Positions 11,001 to 57,300 are shown, counted from the first letter of the stretch. The stretch is DNA of 64,000 nt from Amoebophrya sp. A120 (GCA_905178155.1 CAJINV010000022.1:186001-250000), one strand, 5' to 3'. Notes: generated by a model from the letters alone, not told the origin. Numbers and translations: made by a program.

Positions 11001-14000
11001 CCGGCTTCTTGTCTGCAAGTGGTGAAAACCCCTGTGGGCAGCGGCGGCGCTCATTTGCAGCAGCAAAAACTCTCCGACGACCAGAAATACCTCGCCACTT
11101 TCGCGTGGCTCGCGGGATACAGCATTTTGGTCACGCACAGCAGCGGCACAGGGGCCGAGGAAGGTCAAATAACTACACAGCCGGGATCAGGATCAACACA
11201 AGCTCAAGCTGCAGAAGAACAAAGGCACGCGATCTCCCACCGCCCTGACAGTCCGGCATTGCTGCAAAACCAGGAAAGAACAGAAGTGGAAGAAGCGCTT
11301 CAACAAAAAGCCAAGTCGCTCAAGAAGGTTATCGACAGCAAATTTAAACACATGAACGAGGAAGATGGAAAGCTTCTGACAGAGCAACAGCAGAGGAGAG
11401 CAGGAGGACAAACACCCACCATTTCCAAAATTGAGGAGCAGTTTGCACAAATGGCAGTATCTTCAAAAGAGCGTGGTCGGGACGGCCCTCTCGTCGAAGT
11501 AGAAGATGATTTGTCCCAAATCGCTCCAGAAGTGGTTTTCGAAATCAAGGCGATTCTTCTGCGAGAAGTAGGGCACGAGACTCCCATGCCGAACATCACA
11601 GTTGTCGGGGGGCCTGCAGATGTTGCACCAGATCATCCTTCTCCGCAAGTGCTGAGAACTGCAAGTGCAACTGAAACCCAGAAAAATGCCATTCCCTTTT
11701 TGGAACAAAAGTTTTCTTCTCTGTCGCTCGTCGCGGGTGGGTCGAAGAGGCAAATTGAAAAGCATTTGAACCAAGTTGAAGAGTTTTGGGTGAAACTGCG
11801 GGACAACTTTGTGTTGAAAGATATAATTCCAACGAGACCCCCTGCGCCGACGTCTTCTCCAGCAGCCGAAGCGACATTTTTCGCCAATGTGAAGAGAACG
11901 CGACTTTTAGCCTTGCTTTCCTTACTCCGGGTATTGCGCTGGACCTGGCCGGAGTGTGGTTCCCCTTCGGTGACAGTCCTGACTGAGACTGCCGGTCCGG
12001 AGCAAAGAGACAGACAAAAACTGGCAAAGGACCTGTATCTGTTTTTTGTCCGAGAACAAGCAGGAGAAGGGTCTTCGCGGTTGTCACGGTTGATGTCCTC
12101 TAAAAGCGGTGCTGGTACGGGTAGTGTTGCAGGAGCAGCAGGCGCCGGCAGCGCCGAGCAAGTAGACCAGCATCCTCAAGTAGACCGCCACCGCACCCTG
12201 CTACAGCAAGCGGAACATCAGCTTCTCTTTCCCCGTTATGGATGTGTCAGGTTTGAAATCGACAAAGTTGAAATAACTTGTAATGCATAAAATCGATACC
12301 AGTTGGAAGCCCAATTTCGAAGCGGTGCATGACAAATTTCGGCACCGTGTAAATCCAGTTTGTCATGCTGTTCAGGGACAGAAGGCGTCTTTTGTCATGC
12401 TGCTTTAGCATCTCTGTCGCAGACCCCAAACAGGCTGACAGTCGGCTTCACCTGCCATCCCTGCAAGAGAGGCACTTTGTGCCTTGCATTTTATGCATGA
12501 GAAATTATTTCAACTTTGACGATTTCAATCCTGACATATCCATACCCGTGTGCCGAAACTCCTACCGGAAACCAGCAGTATGTTCGAGTTAGAACACGAA
12601 ACCTCCTTGCAGATGCGTTGCGTCGTTGCTGGTTTGCGGTACGAGCAAGAAGCTTCCGACCACGAGCGCGGTTTTTCTTCAGAAGATGAACAAAAGCTCG
12701 CTGGTTACTGGAACCGGGTATCCTGGGTGCTAAACTACTGTATCGAGAACGAAATTCAATATGTGCGATTAGGAGCAAAATGGGCGTCGAGCAAAGATGT
12801 TGCTGGTGCTTCCGGTTCTTCTGCTGCACCCGTGTATACACCAACTACACCGGCTGATGCTCCTGCGTATTCATCAGGTCTTTCTTTTCCTGATAGTAGA
12901 AGTAGTGGTCTCGCGGCAGCCGACAATATCATGCGGGTGGATCAACATCAAGATCAACAGATCCTGCCAAGAAGTCCAAAGTCGCCGAGCCGCTTGCAAG
13001 AAGGTGCCTACACCACGGAAAGGGAGTTCTTTGTCACCCGGAAATTCCGCGTTTTCGCCGATGAGGAGACGACCAACTTACAAGCACGGGCACTTTTCGA
13101 ACTTTCCCGCGCGGCGGTCATACGAAACGGCTCAAATAATGGTAAGACAACGCAAAAAGCGGACGATTTGGGGAAGAAGGCAGACACTTTTGTCATCCGG
13201 AAATTAAAACCCAGGACAACCGCCGACGCCATCCGGGAAACGCAGTGGAAAACGCGGCGCATTCCCTTCGGAGGACAGCGCCACCTGTCGCACGGCACCC
13301 CTACAAGATTGTGGCCCGCCGTCAGGGATATTTGTAAACATGCGGATCCGGAAAAAAAACAAGAGTTGAAGCAGTTTTTCCATCCGGAAAGGTCGAGTAG
13401 TGTGCAACAGAATATCGCTAGTACGGCGAATTTGCTATCGCTAAGCTACGGCTTGGACCTTTTTTTCACCGACGATACGAGTAGCGATTTTCTGAAGGAG
13501 TTACAGCTTCCGGTTTTTTCGTTTTCCCAGGATGGGGAAGACCTGCGAAAGTGGCTGTTTTCCTCCAGCAAGGGATCTAGCGGGGACAAAGGAAAAACTG
13601 GCAGTCGTGGCAGGAGTAACTCCGTCTTGCGCGGCGCACTTCGCAAGAGGAAGCGAGAGGGATTTCAGGGTGGGCCGCGAGATGGCAGCAGACGAGAACG
13701 CCAAAGCGATCCTGCGGGAGCACAACCACGATCCCCTGCTGAGCAGGACACAAGTAGTAAAGATGCTAAAGGAACCTCGCCGGAAGAAGCTGCAGCACTT
13801 CAACATCCTGACGAAGAAGCCGAGTCTCTCCGGCTGAGAGAAGAGCTCAACGCTGCACTCGTCCGGGCAGTTTCTGCGCTGAGTGCGGAAGTGGACCGGA
13901 TTAAAAACGAGGAAGAGAAAAATGCGAAGAGAAAAGCCCTGCAGAGCTTTTTGCTTCAGGGATTGGAAGACATTTCTCGAACGAGTTGGCGGATGGAAGT

Positions 14001-20578: not shown

Positions 20579-22739
20579 ATGATAAAGCCTTTCGCTACGG
20601 TGGCGTATCCGCAGGCTGCAAGAAAGGTCGGTTTTCAAGAACAAAGCAGGAGCGCATCTTCTTCGTCTTCCGCTTCAAGTGCTGCTGGAACTTGTAGGTT
20701 GTTCCCACCACCATCTTCTTCTGAAGATCCATCAAAACATCAAAAACCAAAAACCATTGCCGATCTTGTTGCCATCGCCAAGGCGAGACGGAATAAGGAA
20801 AGCAGCGACCAAGTTGCAGAACTGTCTCCCTTCGAGGAAGTTGTGACTGCGCCGCAGAAGAAAACAAAGACCACTTCTGGGTCGGTAGAAACAGCAGCAA
20901 CTACTACTACGTCTCCCGTCGAGCCAGTAGCTTCCCCGTCGAATATCACCAGTTCCACGCAAGAGGGCGACGCAGGTCGAGCTGCGTCAGAACAGGCACC
21001 TGCCAAGCCAACGACCCGTCGTCGCGCCGGCGTCGCTTGTTTGCTACGGAGAGGGAAAGAAGAACATCAAGATCATGCTGGACAAGCCCGCAGTACCGAA
21101 GCTAGTGAAACAGAAACAGGTACAACAGTATCCACAGTAAATTTCTTGTACACGTACAGATGCGGTCTCTGCATGACAAAACTTGGCTTCGACCGTAGTT
21201 TAGCATGACAAGTTTTACACTCCAAATTGGTGAAATTTGTGATGCATGTTGTACATGTACGGGAAATTTGTATTGCATAAACAGCATTATCAAGAAACTA
21301 CGAGGTCTTTCTTATACTCCGACAACAGTTGAGAAACGACCCGTGGTCCGGGCAGGTCGCCTTTCCCGGCGGCAAGTCGGAGAAGGATGAAAGTTTGCTT
21401 AACCTGTGCAAAAGCATCGTACTCGTAGCAATTCCAATTGCATTTATGCATTACATACAAATCAAAATCTCTTTCTTAAGCTGTATCCGCATGACAAATT
21501 CCATTTGGCATGCTGAGCTAATTTGTAATGCAATACTACGAGTGCAATACTATACTTTTGCAATTCATATTGCTGGAAACCTGCCTTCGCGAAGTGAAAG
21601 AAGAAGTGGGCATCGACTTGGAAAAAAACAAATCCGCCCACTTCGTCTGCGCTTTAGATCCTATTTCCGTCGCGAAATCCCTCGACGTGTGGTGTCTCGT
21701 GTTTGAGATCGCGGAAGAGGAAAATCATGACAAAAAAACACAGAAGATGAGCAAGAAAATCAAACTGCAGCAGTCCGAAGTCCAGGCGGCCGGGTGGTTC
21801 GACTTGATCAAAAACGGAAAGCCCGCAACCCTCCGCACCGACCTCCGCGAGCACAAAACCTTCACGAAACTTGCGGAATCCAGCTACGGGTTTGTCTCCC
21901 CCGAGTTGCTGCATAGAGTAACGTATCCTGTGCAAAAGTATTGTACTCGTATTGTAATCATGCATTACAAATTTTCTTCTCGATGTAAATCCGCATTACA
22001 AATTTAATTTCTCATGCTGAGGGAATTTGTAATGCTTTTATACGAGTGCGATACTTTCGCACAGGATATAATTGAGTTATTCGGCCTTCACGAAGCGGCG
22101 TTCTCCGGCCAAGTCTGCTTACCGACGGAACTGTATGCGATAGAGCGATCGGGGTCGAAAGCGAAAACGGAGACGGCAGATTTTGCGACAGTGGAAGAGG
22201 AATTCAAGTTAAGTTGGAAAACGCAAGAATACCCGGTGAACGTCTCCGGCTGGAACCCGGGGAAGGTCAAGGGAATGCTGCGAAACGCGATCAAGAATTT
22301 AACGAATTTCACCGCTGTCACGGGAGTTTGCGGAGACAGGGATTTGATCCAACTGCAGCTTTTGGAGAAAAATCCGTTTTTATTGTGGGGTTTGACGCAA
22401 CAACTGCTCGACATGGTGATAAGTAGGACGAACTTACCGAAACCAATGAAGCCGGAGACGAAATTTTTCGGAAAAAAATACGCGAAACGGTTCGGCAGTT
22501 CCTACCACGATATTCTCTTCGGACTGACCATGCAGAAACACCTGCAGAAAGACCGACACTGGCTGGACTTGTGGCAAAGGTACTTTCAGTTTCACGTCGC
22601 GGTTCTGTGTTGTGGAGCGGTGGGGGTCGGCGGTGTGGGGTTGGGCGTATTTTGGAAGTGGTATTTTGGTGGATCTGGGAAGACGAGAAGTAGACCTGGA
22701 ACTGAAACTGATTTAGCGCCACCGGAGGCCAGACTGTAG
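20579..22739 (+). CDS. Nudix hydrolase, CoA-pyrophosphatase-like (NUDT7/NUDT8/PCD1 type), with C-terminal hydrophobic segment; 4 exons
   Basis: Spliced product reads RRRAGVACLLR...FLILRQQLRNDPWSGQVAFPGGKSEKDESLLETCLREVKEEVGI, an exact Nudix box GX5EX7REUXEEXGU. Confidence 0.9.
21129..21279. mobile_element. Introner, family E (tatccacagtaaatttc TIR)
   Basis: TSD aacag/aacag. Confidence 0.92.
21400..21569. mobile_element. Introner, family B (tgcaaaagtatcgtactcgta TIR), inside the Nudix box
   Basis: taacctgtgcaaaag...cttttgcaattcata; TSD ttgct/ttgct. Confidence 0.92.
21924..22068. mobile_element. Introner, family B
   Basis: tatcctgtgc...gcacaggata; TSD taacg/taatt. Confidence 0.9.
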
Positions 22740-26300: not shown

Positions 26301-29300
26301 CTGCGATACTTTTGCAATCCATACGGGCTCTGGTGCCCTGCGAGCGGGTCACGCTGTGGGTGCCGGATCAGGATGCGGAATTAGGGTTGAAGGATATCGC
26401 AACCAGTTCTATCAAGGCGGACACGTTTCTTGTGCAACAAGGAGCAGTTCAGGGTACCACGGGCGTCGAAGGGGTTGGCGGGGGAGAAGAAGGATTACTA
26501 ACCGCTTCCATGGACGAAGACATCAACCGGGTCGGTGGAGTATGAACTGCAAAAGTATCGTACTACGTAGTAATTGCAATACAAATTCGCTCAGCATCAC
26601 AAACGGAGTTTGTCATGCTGACTTGCCTTGGGAACGAGATTTGTAATGCATGACTGCAATTAGAATTACTACGAGCACGATACTTTTGCACAGGATATGG
26701 AACTACAAGCACGAGTAATAAGGAAAAACCACCTGCAGGCACAAGGTTTTCCTCGCGTCCGCAGAGCTCCTCTTCCTCCCGCAGCCGGGAGTCCTGCTAC
26801 GGATCCGTCGGAGGAGGCGGTGGACTACACCCACACAACACATCAAACACTGCGAACAAAACAGTAACCCCGGAACGGCGTTTGAAGTTGTTGGCGAAAC
26901 GGGCGCTGGAGTCCCAGGAGTTGCTGAACCTGTTGTTACCGCCGACTGGCGGGGTCGTGGGTGGAGGTAGTACCAAACCGCCCCGGTTGAGCGAAAATGG
27001 GATGATCAGCAAACAGGTTTCTGGGAATGACGAAAAGTTGCTGGATAACACGGTCTCCTCCTTACCACCTTCCACGCCCTCCGCCTCGGTGGAGCAGATT
27101 GGCGATCAATCGGATGGAAAAAAGGAGAAAAGTGCAACCAAAGCCGGAGCAGCAGGTGCAAGTGTTGAAAATATGTTGTCGCTTTACTCTCTAGTTTTAC
27201 GTCTACTTCTATGTGATGTCTACTTTTTTCTTGATCATCCTCTAAATGATGAAAAGAGAATCAGCAGTTGCTTCTACTCAATGATTAAGATTAGGGTGGA
27301 CCTTACTTCGAATGCGCTGCATTCTGGAGAACATCTCCCTAAACACGACCTTAATTCGATATTACCACGATTAAATCTTCGGGCAAAATGAGATTCGAAT
27401 TGGTAAGTACTAGTAAGCGAAAAAGATCACCCAAAATCCTATCTCCCTAACCGCGGCTAGCTACAGGTACTACCCTGACGCCCTCCGGTGGTGCAGCAGG
27501 AGGTGGTTGCGTCGTGGTCCCGAGGCAAAGCCACACAGACCGCATCAGTTCATCCTCGATTGACACTGATAACTACAAGCGGTCTTCGCGCGAGTACGCA
27601 AAATCTTCAATACAGTCGTTCGTCTGGTGCAGGATTGAAATTTCTCATGTAGACATTTCTGATTTATTTGCAGCCAGCGTGCCCGCTCAATATTTCCGAT
27701 TGGGCATGATTCGGAAGGAGAAAAATGAAAAAAATCTGCAGAAGACGTTATCTATCTTATGCCATCGAAAGATCTCTTCACACGTACCCCGACGACTTTA
27801 CTTTTCCCAATCTTCCATACCCCGCTGACCGCCTACCAAAGCGCTCTCTCCATCCCTATCCGCGGTTCAGCCGAACAAAATCCGTACTTTATCCTGAGTA
27901 AAAACGTCCCCATACCAGAGTCAACGTGGAAAATCTGCTAGACAAATCGGCCAACTTTGGTTGTCTCGCATGTCAAGTTTGTCCTCGTAGTGTAATCCTG
28001 TTTAGCTAGTTCAGAAGCGTCACAGATCTAGCTGCGCATCATGCTATTTCTAGCATCACAAATCCCAAAACGCGACTAGAAAAAGCTTCTCATGGGGCTT
28101 CGCATGAGAAACTTTTTTGGCATGCAAATTTGCATGACGACTCTGGGGTGGGGATGTTTTTTCTTGGGATATACTTTTTAAGCGGACAAAAACCTGCTGC
28201 GATCGGGGTCATCCAGTTTGTAAACCGCATTGTCAACGCCGTGGACGCGCAAGCGATTCAGAATGCGGCGAGCTTCGATGTTCTCGGGCGGGAAGTCCCG
28301 GCGGGTCAACATAGCGCTGCTGGTGTCGCTGCTGGAAGTAAAAATCATGCCGAAGCGGACCAACAACACATCATCCAGATTGGAAGGACTGCTACCGAAG
28401 ATCACAACGTTGATAACGATGTTCTTGGAAAGTCGCCAAGTTTTTCATCTCCGAATCGCATGAGCGGCTGCAATGCCGGTGATCATAACCACGCGGACAT
28501 AGGGGCGCTTGAGCCGTCCGGAACAACTGCCGCGATCGCGAGCAGTGCGAAGCTGCAGCAAGTATCCACAGAAAAAAACCCATCCACATCCATTTTTTGC
28601 ATGACAAACACAGAATTTCATGTATGTTTTGCATGACAAATTGGATGTGGATGGGTGTTTTTTCCTGGATAGAAAGTGGATTTTTTCCACAAGTACCCGA
28701 CGGCCTCAGCCAGCATGACGGAATCGATGTCCCTCCTCCGGCCGGGAGGTGCTACTGCTTCTGTGGGCTTGGGACAGCACGACATCTCGAGTGTGGCGAA
28801 ATTCGCCTCGGCAAAAACCAGCCCGGAGTTGCAACTGGAACCTTCCTGGTCCATTAACAGCAACGCGGGGAAAACCATGTGGGCCAGTATCTGCAAGGGG
28901 AGTTTCGTATCCTGTGCAAAAGTACCGTACTCGTAGTAATTGCAGTCATGGTGCATTACAGTTTTTTTTCTTAAGGGAAATCCGCATGACAATTTTTTTT
29001 TCTCTTGCTGAGGAAATTTGTCATGCATTTATACGAATGCGATGCTTTTGCATTGCATATTTCGCCATGAACCACAAAACTCGGAAAATGAGCATCATGT
29101 CGACGCAGGGCGGTGGAAATCTCACCTCCTCCGGGTTGGGACAACCCCGCAGTTCGGCACCCAGTTGCAACGGCCCGATTAACTTCGGTAACACCAACAA
29201 TTTTGCCAACGTTCCGGAGCAAGCGGCTCTGTCTTTCGCGGAGCGGGAAGCGTCAAACCACGAAAACCAAAACTGCGCAGTATCAGAAAGCGGGAAAGAA

Positions 29301-32300
29301 TCGGCGAAGTCTGCTGCGACTCTAGGCGGGACGAACCAGACGACCGTACAGATGAACTCGTCCCCATTAGAAAACATCCCCTCCGGCTCAGAACTGCCAC
29401 ATAACCAGGAGCAAAATCAGCAAACGGCGGCGACAGCGAATCGGAACAGCCGGCGGTTTGAGCGGAGAAGTTCGAACGCGACGTCGATTAACAGTTCGCC
29501 GACAAGTATGGGAGTGTCAGGATTGAAAGCGATAAAGTTGAAATATATTTATAACTTGTAATGCATGAAATCGATACCAGTTGGAAACCCAATTTCTAGG
29601 CGGCGCATGACAAATTTGGGTAGAGCCCAAATCCAGTTTGTAATGCTGTTTGGGTAAGGGAGACGCCTTTTGTCGTGCTAGTTTGGCAGCTCTGTTTCTA
29701 CCCCCCAACAGGCTTACAATCTGCCTCCCTTGCCTACTCTACAAGACAGGCACTTACTGCGTCGCCTTTTATGCATGGCAAACTATTTCATCAGCTTGAC
29801 GACTTCAATCCTGACACTCCCATAACGAGTTCTCCAACGATGTCCACACCCAGGGACTCGCAGCACGACTCGCTGTATCCACTGCAAATATGTCTAGCTC
29901 TTGAGGAATGCAAACTTGTCATGTATATTTTCGATGCCCCACGAGGTCTGGAATGCAGGACCTAGCATGGCAGGTTCTGCGAAATAGTCTGTATCATGTC
30001 TATCCTGCATGACTACAAATTGCCTCCACAGCCATTGTTTAAAAGTGGACAGGTGTTGGTAATCATGCAACACAAATTTTTGTACGATCCAGACTTAGCA
30101 TGACAAGTTCGCGCCCTTCCAAACCCAGACATACTTGCAATCCATACACTGACCCTTGACAACGGCATGGTCATCCCGCGGAAAAGCTATTTAGCCGGGA
30201 ACACAACCATATGCACTGCAAAACTATCGTAGTAGTATAAATCGCATGACAAATTTCCTCAGCATAAGAAATGAAATTTTTGATGCGAATTCAACCAAAC
30301 AAAAAAAATTGTAATGCATAAATGCGATAAAAATTAGTGCGATACTTTTGTCATGCATAAACCAATTACCAGGACGCGGCCCTGTTCACCTTTTGCGACG
30401 TGCAGTTCATGTATGACAGTGCACAACTCCCCCTCCCCCTCATTTGTAATATAGCATGAACGGCAACAAGCAACAGCAAGAATGTCGGTTTTGCATGACA
30501 AACTTCTACTGGAGGAGAGAGCTATTTGGGCAGCTGCCAGAACTTGTCATGCAAGCAGTGCCAAGAGGCAAAGGGCGAATTGGGTAGGTTGCATGACAAA
30601 TGAGGGGGGGGGAGTTGTGCACTCTCATATCATGCAGGAGATCTGTGAATCACCCATGACACTTGGCGTTTACATCGCGACCTTGGCGAAGAAGTTAGAG
30701 CAGAAGGAACTCCAAAACAACGCGATTGCCGGTTTGGTTAAGACCATGTCGCGGGCGCTGAACGTCCCCGACATTATGGAAGCGATCCGCTCCAAAGTGA
30801 AAGACGTGCTGCAGTGTGAGCGCGCGGTTTGCTTTCTCGTCGATGAGGATCACCAACAAATTTGGTCACCCGCGAGCCACGACTGTCCGAATGGGCTGGT
30901 GGTCGGTGTGGAATCTGGGATTGTCGTATCCAGGAAAAAGCACCCGTCCCCATCCAATTTGCCATGCAAAACATGCATGAGCTCCAGTGTTTGTCATGCA
31001 AAAAAAGGATGGAGGTGGGCGTTTTTTTTTGTTTTTTCTGGATACGTCGGGATTGTCGCCCGGACCGGAGAATCTTACATGGCGAACCGGGTGCGGAAGG
31101 ACCCGAACTGGCTGGGGGATATCGAAGATAATTTCAAAACTAGAAATCTGCTAACCGTCCCGGTGAAAACGCAACAGAAGCTTCGGAATCAGGTCGTGGC
31201 GGTGGTGCAGGCGGTGAATAAGAAGGGCGATTTTGACCGGCACGATGTGGTATGCATTGCAAAAATGTAGTTTGGGTCTGGAAAAATGCCAGGTTTGTCA
31301 TGGTCTGCTAGCTTGACTGTCAAGTCTGTCATGCAAGGTACCCAAAAGCGCCACTTTTGTGTCATGCAAAAACCCAGGCTCTCATGCAGAATAGGCAACA
31401 CCTAGCGACTCAAAAACCTGTCATGCTGAGCCGTCATTTCTGGCGTTCTCTTGATTCGCCAACAAGCATCACAAGTTTCCAGACCCAGACATTTTTCCAT
31501 TTGATACGTGGAGATCATGAACATCTTGGCGTCGGAGATCGCGAATCATTTTGACCGGTTAACCTTGACGATTTTGCACGAGAAAGCGAAGATCGGGGCG
31601 CCGACGCAGGTGGAGTTGACCACGGCGTTGTTGGATTCGTTTTACATGGAGAATAACAACGGTATGATGACGGACCACATGAAAGACAAGATGAACAAGG
31701 AGAAGGAGAACGGACAAAATGAAAACAACGGCTCTTCCTCCACGGACCCCAATGGGAACGGCGGGGCAAACTCGAAGGAGAAGCAAGTCGGGATGCTCGT
31801 AACCGACCGCAAGAACTTCGAGCGGTCTATCGCGTTGAACTTGAATTTTTCCCAGGAGGGCCGGCTTCTGTCCGCCTGCACCTACGACCCAAGAACCTGC
31901 TGGGAAGTGCCGTACCACTCGCTGACGCTGGACGAGACGTTGGGGTTTCTGCTGACGGGGTTGGAGTTCGCGATGGAAACCATTCCGACGAAGACTTTGG
32001 TGAATGTCATGCGGGATTTCAAGGTATAATACGACAGAGTCATAGCAGATCTTCGCTTTCCTAAAGTTGCGTAGTATACAGAATCGGGTTGTGATGCTGC
32101 AGTAGCATGAGGAATTTCATGACAAAACCTCTCCACCTCAGGACAACTACCTCACCACCCCCCGTTTCCACAACTGGGGCCACGCATTGCAAGTTTTCCA
32201 CTCCGCCGTTTTGATGGACCATGTGACACCCAAACTGTCCGGCTTAATGGATTCCGTCCACTCCCTAGCCCTCTTCATCGCTACCATTGCCCACGACGTC

Positions 32301-34169
32301 GCGCACAGAGGGAAAAACAACGGCTTCGAAATTGCGAGTCAATCCGAACTGGTATCCGATGCAAAAGTATCGTACTCGTATTGCAGTCATGCATTGCAAA
32401 TCCTTTTCGTAAGGTAAATCCGCATTGCAGATTTTATTTGTCATGCTGAAGAAATTTGTAATGCATTTATACGAGTGCGATGCCATACTTTTGCAGTGCA
32501 TAACTGGCGTTACTCTACAACGACATCTCGGTTTTGGAAAATCACCACGCGAGTCTGTGCGGGCATATGCATTGCACATATGCCTGGGTCTGGAATAAAC
32601 CTGTAATGCTGAATGGTCATGAGTGAGTGCGCCTCTAAGTGCAGTATTGCATGACAAATTTTTCAAACGCTTTCTCATGCTTAACGCGCATTACAAACTG
32701 CGCTTTTTCATGATCGATGAACTTGCGGCACTTCTGTTGCAGCTTTTATGCAATGCAGATTTTTCTGGAGTCCTGGACACGCAATACAAGCTCAACCCTT
32801 CTAGACCCAGATACTTTTGCACTTGATAGGGCAGATTTTGAAACGACATGATTTCTTACAGCATGTCCCGGACGGGAAGCAGTTCCGGAAAATCGTGATC
32901 AACGCGATTCTCGGTACCGACATGAGCAAACACGGCGACTTGATGAAGAAGATGCAGACTTCGCAGATCGAATCCGACCAGGAGTTGGTTGTGACTTGTT
33001 GTACGCATTGTGCGGATCTCGGAGCGCAGGTCTTGCCCATCTCAACCGCCTGGGAATTCTACATGCGGTGCACGGACGAGTTTATGACAGTGCACAACTC
33101 CCCCTAACCCTCATTTGTATTGCATGAACAGCAATACAGACACCCCCACGTGTGGAGCCTGTGCATGACAAGTTTATGCGCCTGGTCTTCTACTGTTTGG
33201 GCTTCCGGAATCTGTCATGCAAACACTACCACGCAGCAGCGCTTGGATTTGGTATTTTCCATGGCAAATCAGGGGGAGGGGGAGTTGTGCACTCTCATAG
33301 AGTTTCAGCAACAAGCGCTGGATGAGAAGGAACTCGGTTTACCCGTAACTCCTTTCATGACCGGCCAGGAAAACCCGAAAACGCGCGCGTTTGGGCAAGT
33401 GCAGTTCATCGAGTTCGTCGTCATGCCCTTGTGGAAAGCGGTGTCGGAGGTGTTTCCGACAACGAAAATGGTCGCGGAGATTGCGAAACAAGGCGCGTCG
33501 AACATATCCACAAGAACAAATTTCCCGTACACGTACAACTGCGGTATCTGCATGACAAGACTTAGCTTCGATCCTAGTTTAGCATGACAAGTTGGACAGC
33601 ACTCCAAGTTAGCGAAATTTCTCATGCATTTTGTACATGTGCGGGAAATTTGTATTGCATAGAGCAACGGTAAGAACAATCAGGGAACGAGCAGTGAGCA
33701 AGTGTTGTCCCAGGACATGTCCATCCGGAAAGCTACGCAGCCGATTTCTGCCGCTTCCGCGCACAGCAGCCAACAATTGAGAAACGACTCCCGTGCGAAC
33801 TCGCACAACCAACAGGTGCAGTCGGAGTGGCTGAAGAATTTGAATGAAAATCTCGAGGTTTACAAGTTCGTCGCGAAGCACGGAAAACGAAAGTTTGAAT
33901 TGACGGAAGAGGAATTGCAACAGATCGAAATGGAGGAGAAGCGAGTGGAGGAAGAATTGAAACAAAAGGAAAAATTGGAACGGGAAAAGCAGAAGGAGAA
34001 GCAACACCAACGGGGGGCGACTGTCATCAAAAAGGCCAGTCCACCAGCAGCGGGGGTGAGTAGTGCTGGGGAGAGCAGTCGGGGGAACGCGGGAAGCGGT
34101 ACAACTACTGGGGCTCCGAGTAGCAGCCCAAGCAGCAGTAAGGATAGTAAGCCGAAAAGCTCGAAATAG
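23341..34169 (+). CDS. GAF-domain class I 3',5'-cyclic nucleotide phosphodiesterase; more than 20 introns
   Basis: Spliced product has GAF motifs (LVPCERVTLW; LQCERAVCFLVD; FKTRNLLTVP...VVAVVQAVNKKGDF) and PDEase_I motifs FHNWGHA, HDVAHRGKNN, ALLYNDISVLENHH, ILGTDMSKH, HCADLG, EFQQQALDEKELGLPVTPFM, QVQFIEFVVMPLW. One junction near 27630-27760 is unresolved. Confidence 0.93.
24124..24344. mobile_element. Introner, family C (tatgacagtgcacaact TIR)
   Basis: TSD gcgtt/gcgtt. Confidence 0.93.
24444..24694. mobile_element. Introner, family A
   Basis: TSD tgcgg/tgcgg. Confidence 0.93.
24792..24941. mobile_element. Introner, family B
   Basis: TSD gttct/gctct. Confidence 0.9.
25157..25392. mobile_element. 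Introner, family I (tatggcgttctcaaacgttaca TIR)
   Basis: About 40-bp imperfect TIR; TSD cttct/cttct. Confidence 0.92.
26153..26323. mobile_element. Introner, family B
   Basis: TSD cgggc/cgggc. Confidence 0.9.
26541..26697. mobile_element. Introner, family B, opposite orientation to 24792
   Basis: tatgaactgc...gcacaggata; TSD tggag/tggaa. Confidence 0.9.
27156..27466 (+). other. Conventional GT-AG intron
   Basis: cag|gtgcaag...ccctaac (branch-point-like)...ctacag|gt; restores frame. Confidence 0.75.
27890..28171. mobile_element. Introner, family G (tatcctgagtaaaaacgtcccca TIR)
   Basis: TSD tactt/tactt. Confidence 0.92.
28563..28671. mobile_element. Introner, family H; shortest copy, 109 bp
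   Basis: tatcca...aaaaacccatccacatcc / ggatgtggatgggtgtttttt..ggata; TSD gcaag/gaaag. Confidence 0.9.
28908..29059. mobile_element. Introner, family B
   Basis: TSD tttcg/tttcg. Confidence 0.92.
29507..29824. mobile_element. Introner, family D
   Basis: TSD acaag/acgag. Confidence 0.92.
29876..30146. mobile_element. Introner, family A
   Basis: TSD cgctg/cactg. Confidence 0.88.
30210..30359. mobile_element. Introner, family B
   Basis: TSD aacca/aacca. Confidence 0.9.
30412..30629. mobile_element. Introner, family C
   Basis: TSD tcatg/tcatg. Confidence 0.93.
30927..31044. mobile_element. Introner, family H
   Basis: TSD tgtcg/cgtcg; 123 nt removed, stop-free and in frame inside the GAF ORF. 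Confidence 0.88.
31251..31506. mobile_element. Introner, family A
   Basis: TSD tgtgg/cgtgg. Confidence 0.9.
32024..32141 (+). other. GT-AG intron that appears to be a decayed introner
   Basis: aag|gtataa...cctcag|gac; retains tgtgatgc, gcatga and catgacaaa motifs but no TIR; splicing restores FK|DNYLTTPRFHNWGHA. Confidence 0.8.
32353..32502. mobile_element. Introner, family B
   Basis: TSD actgg/actgg. Confidence 0.92.
32566..32828. mobile_element. Introner, family A
   Basis: TSD gggca/gggca. Confidence 0.9.
33083..33299. mobile_element. Introner, family C
   Basis: TSD gagtt/gagtt. Confidence 0.93.
33505..33661. mobile_element. Introner, family E
   Basis: TSD gaaca/gagca. Confidence 0.9.
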
Positions 34170-35969: not shown

Positions 35970-36305
35970 GGACACAAAAAGCACGACTGCGCAGAGGAAT
36001 TTTTCGGCTATTACCGTTCTTGCAACAGTTTGAGCTCACCCTGACGGAGCTCCAGATTGCCACAAGCCGGGTTCCTGTTCTGCGAGGAAGATCCCCGCGC
36101 CAGAGAGTAGAAAGTACTAACGGAGTAGATCGTAGTTGCGATTTCGCTTGTTCCTCACGTTTTCACTTTTCCTTCTGGATTTGTCATGCAAAACGCTGTT
36201 TAGGGACAAGATTTCGTAACTCGCGATAGTTTATTTTCAAAGTTAATGTCGTGAGCAATTTTTTCAAATATTGCGAACAAAACGGGGTCTACTCTTTTGA
36301 TGTCC
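35970..36305 (+). ncRNA. RNase MRP RNA-like gene, copy 1
   Basis: P1 GGACACAAAA/UUUUGAUGUCC; P2 CACGAC/GUCGUG; CR-I GAGGAAGAUCCCCG; P8 AGUA-GAAAG-UACU (GARAR loop); CR-IV AGUUA; CR-V AACAAAACGGGGUCUACUC. Confidence 0.85.
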
Positions 36306-36569
36306 ACAAAGGGAGAATTATAGTGTGTTTGTCGCCTATCAATAATGTTGATCTCGTCTCTCCTATTACCGAGGGAGCTACGCAAATTTCAACTTATCAT
36401 CTTAGACCCCATGCCGTAGTACCAAGGTAATAGTAGTGCTGCCGCAGCCCCCGCAGGTTTTTCTGGCTGTCGTAGCGAGTTCCACTAAAGTAGATGTAGG
36501 TGTAGAAAAACAAATCTGAAACTGGAGGAGTTGTTTTTATCTAGAAAGCGAGCCCGATGATTATATTAT

Positions 36570-36888
36570 GGACACGAAAAGCACGACTGCGCAGCGGTAT
36601 GTACCTTTGTCCCAGCGCGAGTCTACCGACGAGACTTGTGTTTACGGCAAGTCATTGTACCGTGTGCGAGGAAAATCCCCGCGCCAGAGGGTAGAAAGTA
36701 CCAACGGAGTAAATCGTAGTTGCGTTCTGGGTCACAAGTCAATATGTGTATACCCTCCCCATACCATATTCTGATGTGACAAATCTTCAGCCGAGGAAAT
36801 AACGGGATGTAACTTGCGATAGTTTTTAAAAGTTAATGTCGTGAGCATAGTTTTTGCTAACAAAACGGGGTTTACTCTTTCGATGTCC
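36570..36888 (+). ncRNA. RNase MRP RNA-like gene, copy 2
   Basis: P1 GGACACGAAA/UUUCGAUGUCC; CR-I GAGGAAAAUCCCCG; P8 GGUA-GAAAG-UACC; AGUUAAUGUCGUGAGC; CR-V AACAAAACGGGGUUUACUC. Confidence 0.85.
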
Positions 36889-37204
36889 GGCCACGATTAT
36901 GGGCTTCCTCTACTTTTTAGATTTTTCTCTTTCCTACTGCACTAGTTCTACGTGGACTTCTCTCCGATTATAGCCACCTCAATACGGGCGTGCAACGAGG
37001 CTGCGTCTGTACCGTCCCCGCAGCACACTACTTTCACTATTATTAGACCACAGAAAGGGCGGCGGCAGAGACAGCACTTGGCATGTTGATGCGCCTTTAG
37101 CACGGCGGTCATCCTAGTCTACCTCGCTTCTTCTCATGAAATGCGCCACAAGACATGTCTATGCAGTACATGTCTCGCGCTGGAACCAACCCCCACTACT
37201 TCCC

Positions 37205-37524
37205 GGACACAGAAAGCACGACTGCGCAGCGGGTAGTGAACTATTGTCCCAGCCGCACAGGCCCACCCTGACGGGGCTTTTGCGCGTGACAAATTGTACT
37301 CCCGATTGCGAGGAAAATCCCCGCGCCAGATGGTAGAAAGTGCCGATGGTCGATCACAGTTGCATTTAACATCGAGTCCCACTTCATTGCTTGTCTCTAA
37401 ACCTTCGTCTGTCTTGCATGACAAGGTGACACGCAGGGGCTCTGATGTAACTCGCGATCTTTTTCAAAAGTTAATGTCGTGAGCTTTTATAGCTAACAAA
37501 ACGGGGTTTACTCTTCTGATGTCC
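37205..37524 (+). ncRNA. RNase MRP RNA-like gene, copy 3
   Basis: P1 GGACACAGAA/UUCUGAUGUCC; CR-I GAGGAAAAUCCCCG; P8 GGUA-GAAAG-UGCC; AGUUAAUGUCGUGAGC; CR-V AACAAAACGGGGUUUACUC. Confidence 0.85.
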
Positions 37525-54300: not shown

Positions 54301-57300
54301 GGAGGAGGGGGAAACTCTACTGCAGGACCTACAACCGGGTCGTCTTCAGCACATCAACAGCACAAAAATTTTTCGTCCTTTGACCGGTCGTTCTTCGATC
54401 TCCTCGACCTCTTCAGCCTGCTGTCCGATCCGGAGTACCTATGACAGTGCACAACTATCCCTGCTCCCCCTCATTTCCCATGCAAAATACCAAATCCAGG
54501 CTGTGCCTCCTGTCACTGCTTGCATGACAAACTTCGGAAGAAGTAGCCGAAACAGTAATACACTCGTCCTGGAAAAATTTGTCATGCAAAACCAGCATTC
54601 TTGCTGCCGCTTGTACTGCCGTTCATGCTATACAAATGAGAGGGCGGGGGAGTAGTTGTGTACTGTCATACCACGATAAGGAAAGACTGAAGTTGGAAGA
54701 CTACTTGGACACGGAGTTGCGAAATCAGTTGATGATCAAAGAGCAGTCCAATCTAATTCGCCTCCTGTCCGAGAAGTGTAAACTGGACGACTTTCTTCTC
54801 TGTTACTTTGGGTCCGACTTCACGGAGCCGCCCCACGACAGCGTTTTGTCCACGCTCGCCTTTGCCTGCAAAAATTTTCTCTCTTTACTCACCGAGAAGG
54901 TGCTCGCGAAGTCGGCGGAGCAGTGGGCGCGGGAATTGGTAGATAAGTGCGTATATGAACTGCAAAGGTATCGTACTGGTAGTGATTGCAGTCATGCATT
55001 ACAAATCTTTTTCTTAACGTAAATCCGCATGACAAATTTTATTTCCCACGCTGAGAAAATTTGTGATGCATCTTTACGAGTGCGATGCTTTTGCAATTCA
55101 TAGCGTAAATGGAGGGGACACTACTTCAAGCGGGACCACCAGCGGGGGAGCAAACCTTTATCACTTCGGAATAGCGACGAGCTCAGGTGCTGGGGGCTCT
55201 TCTTCTTCCTCTTCTTCAGCGAATAACTACAGGGCTTTTGGTGCAGAGGCTGATGGAGGGGCCTCCTCCTCTTCTCACAACGGGTTGTACATCGTGCCGT
55301 TTGCCTGTGTTTTCAATGTGCAAGCCACGGTTGTGGACGACATCGAGTTCTTTTCACCGACGAAAAACCCCATCGCGGAAAAACTGCCGGCTATGCATTG
55401 CAAAATTATCGTACTAGTACAAGATGCAATACAAATTTCATTAGCATGAGAAATGAAATTTGTGGTCATGGTGATTTGCCTTGGGAACGAGATTTGTAAT
55501 GCTAATGCAAGAGTGCAAGTACTACGAGTTACTCGTAACGAGTACGATACTTTTGCAGCGCATACCGGTGATCGCGCAGCTGATAAACCGGTTCGCGTTT
55601 GTGTTTCTCCAGCACATTGACTCGCTGATATGCATTGCAAATATCCCTGGTTGTCTGGAAGATTTTTGCGAGATTTGTCATGCTAGCCTCGCATGACTCT
55701 GAATTCTGTATTGCGTGGCCGCATAGAGCTCCTCTTGCCTGTTATGCAAAAACGCAGCTTCTCATGCGGAGTAATACGCAACTCAGAACCATGGAAAAAC
55801 TTGTCATGCTTGGCAGTGCATTGCAGTGCGCTCCCTCGTAGTCCCTTCCTTGCACCATCACAAGTTTCCAGACATCCAGGGATATTTGCACTGGATAGCT
55901 GAACGTCACCTACAACCTGAACCTCCTCGGGCCCAACGTGCACGATTACCACGGGACTCGTGGCGGAAGAACCAGCGCAACGACGAGCGACGACGAGGAC
56001 CTGAGCAGATCCGAAGATGCGGATTCGGATATAGAGATGAGCGACGCCGCAATTGGGACTAGTAGCCCTTTATTCGCCAGCGGGCTGCAGTCCTCGCACC
56101 ATCATCCTGACCACGCGGGGGGCTCGTCGTCCCCCCTGCTTTCGGGCAGCGCGAGCGCTTTCGGGGCGGCCACGATCGCGGGCGCGGGAGGTGCAACTTC
56201 GTCTACTTCTAACATGAACAATAAACCTATCCACAGGAAATTTCCCACACACGACGTACAGGTGCGGTTTCTGCATGACAAACTTTCTTGTTTCGAATCG
56301 CTTTTCCGCATGACAATTCATGGAAATTTGTCGAAACAGGTGAATCAATAAATTTGTGATGCACCATTCTGTACATGAACATGTCGAGGAAATTTGTATT
56401 GCATAAAAGCAAGCCGAGACGACAGTCCAAACGACTCCGGCCCGGCCGTGGACAAGTTCGGCTTCACGTCCTTTACTGGCGGTAACGGGGAAGAGGGAGT
56501 ATCCTGTGCAAAAGTATCGTACTCGTAGTAATTGCATTTGTGCATTACAAATCTCGTTCCCAAGGCAAATCAGCATGACAAATTGCATTTGTCATGCTGA
56601 GGGAATTTCAATTTGTCATGCAATTTATATACTAGTACGATACTATTGCAGTTCATAGGGAAACGCAAGAAACAAAATCCGGTTTCCCCAGCTCCTGCAA
56701 CTCGTGCGGCATCGCGTTTGCGGGCTGGCGAGATCGCTGTACGACAAGTTTCGAAGGAGACAAGATTTGTTCTCGTCCTCTTCAACATCTTCCACTAGCA
56801 GTGCCAGCGCGATGCGAACCGGTACTACTACTTCAGCGGCGAGTACTTCTACGTCTAGTGTGGTTAATATCGGCACCAGCAATAAAATCGATTGGACCAT
56901 CGCATTTTCCGGCACGAGGCGGAGCAATTTGGTGCTCACCGAGCTGCCCCACTGCATTCCCTTCCATATGCATTGCAAAAATGTTTGGGTCTGGATGAAT
57001 GCAGGAGATGTTTGTAGTGCAGTGGTTGCATGACACAGAGTGTCTGGCATGCAGGGACCAGCATCACAGGTTCTTCGAAAGCCCCATGATGCCTACTCTG
57101 CATGAGAAATCATCCGCTCTCTCCAGGACCGAAAATAGACATCGTTTGTTGTTTTTGCAAGACAAATTTTTCTGCGATCTGAAATGCGCATCACAGGTTG
57201 AAACCCTCCAGACCCAGACATGTTTGCTCTTGATATTCCAAGACCGCGTGCAGTTTTTGCAGGAGTGGATTCGCATCGACCACGACATTATCAAGTGCAA

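Follow-up and report, generated by a model that had tools for sequence, protein, structure and literature searches.

Positions 35970 to 37524 of a 64,000-nucleotide stretch from the genome of Amoebophrya sp. A120, a parasitic syndinian dinoflagellate (GCA_905178155.1, CAJINV010000022.1:186001-250000), probably hold three RNase MRP-type RNA genes, anciently duplicated and all functional. The whole of this 64-kb stretch was analyzed and is called the window below, with positions counted from its first letter. RNase MRP is a eukaryotic ribonucleoprotein that cuts a single-stranded spacer of precursor ribosomal RNA (pre-rRNA) and a few other RNAs. To our knowledge, the RNA subunit is indispensable, and the species studied encode it in a single gene or in near-identical ones; several plants and Paramecium carry more than one MRP RNA gene. 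A preliminary description of this DNA, made before any database search, had proposed three units of 319 to 336 nt spaced 600 and 635 bp apart, and the coordinates agree: the units follow one another in the same orientation on the + strand, and their starts at 35970, 36570, and 37205 give a pitch of 600 and 635 bp. Conservation between the units runs from a first block, GGACAC, to a last block, GAUGUCC, and these limits coincide with the P1 helix. The array is laid out as follows.

35970..36305, + strand: copy 1, putative RNase MRP RNA gene, 336 nt; the most diverged copy, with the longest P3
36306..36569, no strand: spacer 1, 264 bp; unlike spacer 2 and the flanks (z 0.7 to 2.2), without RNA contigs
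36570..36888, + strand: copy 2, putative RNase MRP RNA gene, 319 nt
36889..37204, no strand: spacer 2, 316 bp; unlike spacer 1 and the flanks, without RNA contigs
37205..37524, + strand: copy 3, putative RNase MRP RNA gene, 320 nt

At the Rfam gathering thresholds, no family matched anywhere in the window. In E-value mode, the RNase_MRP model (RF00030) matched all three units over its full length, model positions 1 to 266, with 40.8 bits for copy 2 (E = 9e-10), 37.1 bits for copy 3 (E = 1.3e-8), and 22.9 bits for copy 1 (E = 3.5e-4). When the same model was run against the whole genome, copies 2 and 3 were the top two matches (E = 1.3e-8 and 1.9e-7), and in clan competition it outscored the related RNase P models on each of the three copies. 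The RNase MRP-type identity suggested by the preliminary description is therefore borne out, by a significant covariance-model match for each unit and by the MRP-specific RNA hallmarks set out below. The printed alignments begin 19 to 81 nt inside each unit, so the true 5' strands of P1 and P2 add nothing to the score; we think that these uncounted strands, together with a long P3, account for part of the shortfall from the Rfam cut-off.

A structure model of 76 pairs was set out on the three-way alignment of the copies. The P4 pseudoknot by which an RNase MRP RNA is recognized forms in all three, from a GNAANNUCCCC-like conserved region I (CR-I) and a ACNNNANGGGGNUNA-like CR-V. The CR-I/P4 5' strand has the consensus GAGGAARAUCCCCG, being GAAGAUCCCC in copy 1 and GAAAAUCCCC in copies 2 and 3, and its partner CR-V reads ACAAAACGGGGUYUACUC; in copy 1, AGAUCCCCG at 36089-36097 faces CGGGGUCU at 36283-36290. 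A 2026 structural and phylogenetic study found that three RNA features separate MRP from RNase P across eukaryotes, namely a 3-bp P5 adjoining CR-I, a GARAR pentaloop on P8, and a six-nucleotide CR-IV of the form A-G-N-N-A-N (PMC13184271). The P5 and GARAR features match exactly in all three copies. CR-IV fits the Rfam MRP consensus AGUUAu once a 1-nt insert is allowed and is clearly not of the eight-nucleotide RNase P type. The CR-I, P8, CR-IV, CR-V, and P4 motifs quoted in the preliminary description were each found in place, and its P1 stood in part: the five inner pairs are as quoted (CAAAA/UUUUG, CGAAA/UUUCG, and CAGAA/UUCUG in copies 1, 2, and 3), while the full helix has 10 bp, GGACA plus these five, with a bulged A. 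From the 5' end, the elements are as follows.

P1, + strand: copy 1 35970-35979 with 36295-36305; copy 2 36570-36579 with 36878-36888; copy 3 37205-37214 with 37514-37524; 10 bp with one bulged A, pairing in 100% of cells, 2 two-sided changes
P2, CACGAC/GUCGUG, + strand: copy 1 35982-35987 with 36248-36253; copy 2 36582-36587 with 36838-36843; copy 3 37217-37222 with 37476-37481; 6 bp, invariant; Rfam sets the P2 3' strand on GUCGUG
P3 domain, + strand: copy 1 35991-36083; copy 2 36591-36667; copy 3 37226-37309; basal helix, internal loops, and distal hairpin
CR-I and P4 5' strand with CR-V, + strand: copy 1 36084-36097 with 36276-36294; copy 2 36668-36681 (GAGGAAAAUCCCCG) with 36859-36877; copy 3 37310-37323 with 37495-37513; 11-bp pseudoknot, pairing in 100% of cells
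P5, CGC/GCG, + strand: copy 1 36098-36100 with 36223-36225; copy 2 36682-36684 with 36816-36818; copy 3 37324-37326 with 37454-37456; 3 bp directly after P4, invariant
P8 hairpin with GAAAG (GARAR) pentaloop, + strand: copy 1 36106-36118; copy 2 36690-36702; copy 3 37332-37344
P9-like short hairpin, + strand: copy 1 36120-36133; copy 2 36704-36717; copy 3 37346-37357; 3 bp, one two-sided change
P10/P12-like long hairpin, + strand: copy 1 36134-36221; copy 2 36718-36814; copy 3 37358-37452; base AGUUGC/GUAACU invariant
CR-IV, AGUUAA plus one unpaired U before P2, + strand: copy 1 36241-36247; copy 2 36831-36837; copy 3 37469-37475; invariant
eP19 hairpin between P2 and CR-V, + strand: copy 1 36254-36275; copy 2 36844-36858; copy 3 37482-37494; 4 bp

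P3 is a helix-loop-helix of 77 to 93 nt whose topology is the same in the three copies (fold z -1.7, -3.3, and -2.8), with ACC(CU)GACG as the loop of its distal hairpin. The P8 loop is GAAAG in each copy, and its 4-bp stem, AGUA/UACU, GGUA/UACC, and GGUA/UGCC in copies 1, 2, and 3, has one two-sided and one one-sided change. The 3' strand of P5 falls just after the P12-like hairpin, whose interior is rewritten in every copy; because P5 is invariant in the three copies, it has no covariation support of its own.

Across the three copies, 95.1% of the model's cells form pairs. Two-sided compensatory changes are found at 13 pairs: seven in P3, two in P1, and one each in P4 (A-U in copies 2 and 3, G-C in copy 1), P8, P9, and eP19 (A-U to U-A). 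Sliding the 3' partners by 1 to 3 columns left 0 to 4 compensated pairs and 34 to 44% pairing, and none of 500 column shuffles reached 13; such controls do not amount to probabilities when three related sequences are compared, but the contrast is large. The compensatory changes between copies reported earlier thus hold up. Outside the catalytic blocks, divergence is far advanced. Unit-to-unit local alignments reach z scores of 41 to 65 against shuffles, and those of the spacers and outer flanks lie between -1.1 and 2.2. Pairwise identity of the copies is 67 to 71% overall and 34 to 41% in the P12 interiors, a value that we take to be near noise. The P12-like domains still fold as long hairpins (z -5.0, -3.4, and -3.5), with none of 200 shuffles as stable. 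What is identical among the copies is the set of universally conserved MRP elements: P2, the P4 core, P5, the P8 loop, and CR-IV are fixed, and distal P3, P9, P12, and eP19 are rewritten.

Since the spacers and P12 interiors can no longer be aligned and the catalytic blocks are identical, we conclude on sequence grounds that a segment of about 600 to 635 bp underwent tandem duplication long ago, that neutral positions are saturated by now, and that purifying selection has retained all three RNAs. The structural selection on all three that the preliminary description had postulated accords with the compensatory changes in P1, P3, P4, P8, P9, and eP19 and with unrelated P12 domains that still fold. 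Gene conversion alone is insufficient to explain the pattern, because compensated differences sit inside P1, P4, and P8. Retroposed copies were ruled out, because the units lack A-tails and flanking direct repeats and stand in tandem at a regular pitch.

Public RNA data support transcription of at least two of the copies. Five studies contributed eight RNA libraries in which small shares of the array's 31-mers occur; these are metatranscriptomes with the labels estuary, aquatic, freshwater, and seawater. Contigs from two random-primed estuary metatranscriptomes were compared with a 2.5-kb stretch holding the array, and three of them match.

36090-36283: contig on copy 1, depth 20, 1 mismatch
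36645-36825: contig on copy 2, depth 10.6, 0 mismatches
36584-36842: contig on copy 2, depth 3.1, 0 mismatches

Elsewhere in the 2.5-kb stretch, in spacers and flanks alike, these two metatranscriptomes gave no contigs. Because the contigs lie strictly inside copies 1 and 2, their pattern argues for RNA rather than contaminating DNA as the source and for expression of at least two copies. Their ends coincide with blocks common to the copies, which are expected break points for an assembler. In two raw-read RNA runs that bear the organism's label, not one read fell on the 2.5-kb stretch, a result that carries no weight either way. In two poly(A)-selected aquatic metatranscriptomes, 8 to 12% of the array's words were present. 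The Amoebophrya genome paper raised the possibility that small nuclear RNAs (snRNAs) are polyadenylated (PMC7789003), and by analogy the MRP RNA may be polyadenylated as well.

These data bear on whether a single gene works here beside one or two duplicates in decay, which we regard as very unlikely. Copy 1 has the lowest Rfam score (22.9 bits) and, in the shared model, the highest number of non-standard cells (nine), and no RNA of copy 3 turned up in the two estuary metatranscriptomes, all of which would suit decay. However, of the nine cells of copy 1, three are alignment gaps at the inner end of the P12 stem and the other six are pairs in P3 or eP19, whereas its core helices P1, P2, P4, P5, and P8 are fully paired and include compensated changes, and the deepest RNA contig (depth 20) belongs to this same copy. 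In a pseudogene of the spacers' age, the identical core blocks would be gone, and the P12 domains of all three copies have significant folds. The preliminary description had said that its proposal would fall with a lack of covariance-model matches, or with one expressed copy beside others whose helices were breaking; what was found is a significant covariance match, at least two copies seen as RNA, and no core helix broken.

The three copies are the only ones found in the genome. A covariance model made from the three copies, which scores copies 1, 2, and 3 at 310, 342, and 349 bits, detected no fourth copy in the 115.5-Mb genome and nothing else better than an E-value of 7.9, and no relic copies were found within 28 to 46 kb of the window. 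Pattern scans of metagenomes for CR-I to P8 and for CR-V returned 0 matches each, and hence no relatives for covariation. A weak RF00030 match on contig 19 was rejected as chance, being only 29 nt long and situated in G/K/P-rich, coding-like sequence. Adjoining it, at 1013-1089 on the - strand of the extracted stretch, is a weak C/D-box small nucleolar RNA (snoRNA) match (DdR13, 25.7 bits, E = 0.01), which may be a snoRNA.

Each RNA would be the catalytic part of one RNase MRP particle, with the P4 pseudoknot of CR-I and CR-V as its active site. A 10-bp P1 closes each RNA, and P5, the P8 GARAR loop, and CR-IV stand around the active site; by analogy with human and yeast structures, these three elements, together with Pop1, Pop4/Rpp29, and Rmp1/RMP64, could form a groove for single-stranded substrate (PMC13184271). 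Because the substrate-contacting elements are identical in the three RNAs, all three enzymes most likely perform the same chemistry and would obey the same core substrate rule. The particles would then differ only in their peripheral arms (distal P3, P9, P12, and eP19), which bind accessory proteins in other species. The three RNAs might be (i) redundant or dosage isoforms or (ii) isoforms that differ in assembly, localization, or life stage. A reasonable guess is that they are cut from a longer precursor, with P1 setting the mature ends, since the units share no upstream motif, have no consistent T-run terminator, and point in the same direction as the flanking genes.

The preliminary description had gone further and suggested a family of paralogs with different substrates. 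This part is not supported: the P4 core, P5, P8 GARAR loop, and CR-IV are identical, and the differences are peripheral. Different substrates for the three copies are possible and, for now, pure speculation. In a broader form, the three copies would be specialized paralogs, building distinct MRP particles that differ in substrates, partners, locations, or stages (dinospore versus intracellular trophont); we consider this rather unlikely, with several observations in its favor. All three copies were retained through a divergence that erased the spacers, arrays maintained for dosage are usually homogenized and this one is not, and both P3, which binds Pop6/7 (Rpp20/25) elsewhere, and P12 differ strongly while remaining folded. 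Yet the three copies do not differ in CR-I, CR-V, P5, the P8 loop, CR-IV, or P2, which means that the known anchors of the -2 and +4 substrate positions (PMC13184271) should be the same, and only one Pop1 gene was found. We speculate, as a long shot, that heterogeneous MRP particles share one core and carry different P3 and P12 arms that steer them to different RNAs or stages, with one of them perhaps replacing RNase P RNA or PRORP, or acting on non-canonical intron elements.

Searches for protein partners found Pop1 once. In a six-frame search, its POP1_N and POPLD domains lie 1.5 kb apart on contig 4, and the count of Pop1 paralogs proposed as a check thus gave a single gene and no sign of protein paralogs to match the three RNAs. 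No PRORP domain was detected in the six-frame search of the genome, nor any nuclear RNase P RNA (RF00009) genome-wide. Both are weak negatives, because the genes are intron-rich and fast-evolving and 15 of the 5,259 RNA candidates were scored. For tRNA 5' end maturation in Amoebophrya sp. A120, the inventory consists of Pop1, found once, with RNase P RNA and PRORP undetected in these weak searches.

Such an inventory invites the idea that one of the three RNAs has taken over the nuclear RNase P role at the 5' end of pre-tRNA. The empty RF00009 and PRORP searches fit it, MRP RNA derives from P RNA, and plant MRP RNAs co-purify with RNase P activity (PMC3439889). We nevertheless find it barely credible. 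All three copies have the MRP-type P5, GARAR loop, and short CR-IV; a CR-IV of eight nucleotides and a P7 stem apart from CR-I are lacking in every copy, and CR-II/III-like sequence was not looked for. Swapping CR-IV lengths impairs function in human cells (PMC13184271), and both genome negatives are weak, the other small subunits having been missed too.

The closest known relative, RNase MRP RNA itself (RF00030; human RMRP and yeast NME1), shares with the array copies P1, P2, P3, the P4 pseudoknot, a 3-bp P5, the GARAR P8, the AGNNAN CR-IV, and eP19. Between the P5 strands of the copies stand P8, P9, and one long P10/P12-like hairpin, as in MRP, and not a P-type S-domain. The copies depart from known MRP RNA in scoring below the Rfam cut-off, in the length of P3 (77 to 93 nt) and of the P12-like hairpin, and in the extra unpaired U between CR-IV and P2. 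They also form three diverged tandem genes instead of one, and two of the three are not followed by a T-run of the RNA polymerase III (Pol III) type. Nuclear RNase P RNA (RF00009), a member of that clan, has in common with the copies a P1-P4 catalytic core, CR-I, CR-IV, and CR-V, and proteins such as Pop1. In RNase P RNA, however, CR-IV is eight nucleotides long, P7 stands apart from CR-I, P5 is missing, and CR-II/III T-loops bind tRNA (PMC13184271); the first three of these features are absent from all three copies, and CR-II/III-like sequence was not searched for. Arabidopsis thaliana is the closest precedent that we found, with more than one expressed MRP RNA gene (MRP1 and MRP2) beside a single Pop1 gene (PMC3439889). 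The Arabidopsis genes are so similar that quantitative PCR cannot separate them (PMC3439889), whereas the array copies are 67 to 71% identical, with P12 interiors and spacers that cannot be aligned. In the literature searched, we found no report of an RNase MRP RNA from dinoflagellates or Amoebophrya, nor of diverged MRP RNA paralogs, and the Amoebophrya genome paper is silent on RNase MRP and RNase P (PMC7789003). We are therefore dealing with a known RNA family in an unusual gene organization: three old, strongly diverged, and structurally intact copies side by side.

Several observations weigh against three functional RNase MRP RNA genes. All three RF00030 scores are under the Rfam gathering cut-off of 50 bits, and the extra unpaired U between CR-IV and P2 permits a 7-nt reading of CR-IV in place of the strict six. 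Covariation comes from three paralogs of one genome only. No orthologous array was found, a search with the upstream phosphodiesterase exon having led to a single 1.6-kb contig, too short to reach the array. In the two estuary metatranscriptomes, copy 3 is without a contig, and contigs give presence only, not the ends, size, strand, or level of an RNA. Finally, Rpp29, Rpr2, Rpp30, and Rpp14/Pop5 were not found in six-frame genome searches, which are weak negatives as well.

The array lies in a stretch of about 4 kb without a long open reading frame (ORF), between two neighbors on the + strand, a GAF/phosphodiesterase gene upstream and a low-complexity ORF downstream. The upstream neighbor, at 30482-33587 (+), is a multi-exon cyclic-nucleotide phosphodiesterase with a GAF exon at 30482-31270 and a C-terminal PDEase_I exon at 33120-33587. 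In the 200 nt upstream of the units there is no common motif, and the downstream flanks are unrelated. Pol III-type T-run terminators are not consistent, with T5 runs within 40 nt downstream of copy 2 only. Genome-wide, the dinoflagellate spliced-leader 21-mer occurs 63 times versus 0 times for its reversed control, as fits a dinoflagellate host. Of the 17 ORFs of at least 250 amino acids in the window, 16 are on the + strand, and none of the 7 long ORFs tested has a Pfam domain; this strand bias and the domain-less ORFs agree with the published picture of Amoebophrya, in which genes form one-directional runs and proteins evolve fast (PMC7789003).

Separately from the array, the window is rich in a 9-mer, GCATGACAA, with an extended consensus of about TctGCATGACAAATT. 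It occurs 73 times in 64 kb versus about 1 expected, 42 times on the + strand and 31 times on the - strand, and is often paired 32 to 40 nt apart inside otherwise unrelated introner-like elements. Six of its sites are given as examples.

2030-2038: GCATGACAA site
12327-12335: GCATGACAA site
21171-21179: GCATGACAA site
28599-28607: GCATGACAA site
33550-33558: GCATGACAA site
56273-56281: GCATGACAA site

The 9-mer looks like a common signal of non-canonical intron elements. Most introns in Amoebophrya are non-canonical, and U1 snRNA was not found (PMC7789003). Near the tip of the P12-like hairpin, it recurs in copy 1 (36181-36189, - strand, hence antisense in the RNA) and in copy 3 (37416-37424, + strand, sense), and the P12 of copy 2 has a partial match only (UGACAAAU). 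Enrichment of the motif in the MRP variable domains was rejected, as 2 matches in 975 nt equal the window background of 1.14 per kb. The P12 sites may have been left behind by elements that inserted where the RNA is under least constraint.

If the three genes are what they appear to be, the Rfam cut-off overlooks MRP RNA in this lineage, and the array adds a missing piece to the annotated non-coding RNAs of a lineage with an odd RNA machinery (PMC7789003). It would also serve as a natural experiment, separating the parts of the ribozyme that have to remain unchanged (P2, P4, P5, the P8 loop, and CR-IV) from those that can be rewritten (distal P3, P12, and eP19), and it raises the question of whether one cell holds several kinds of RNase MRP.

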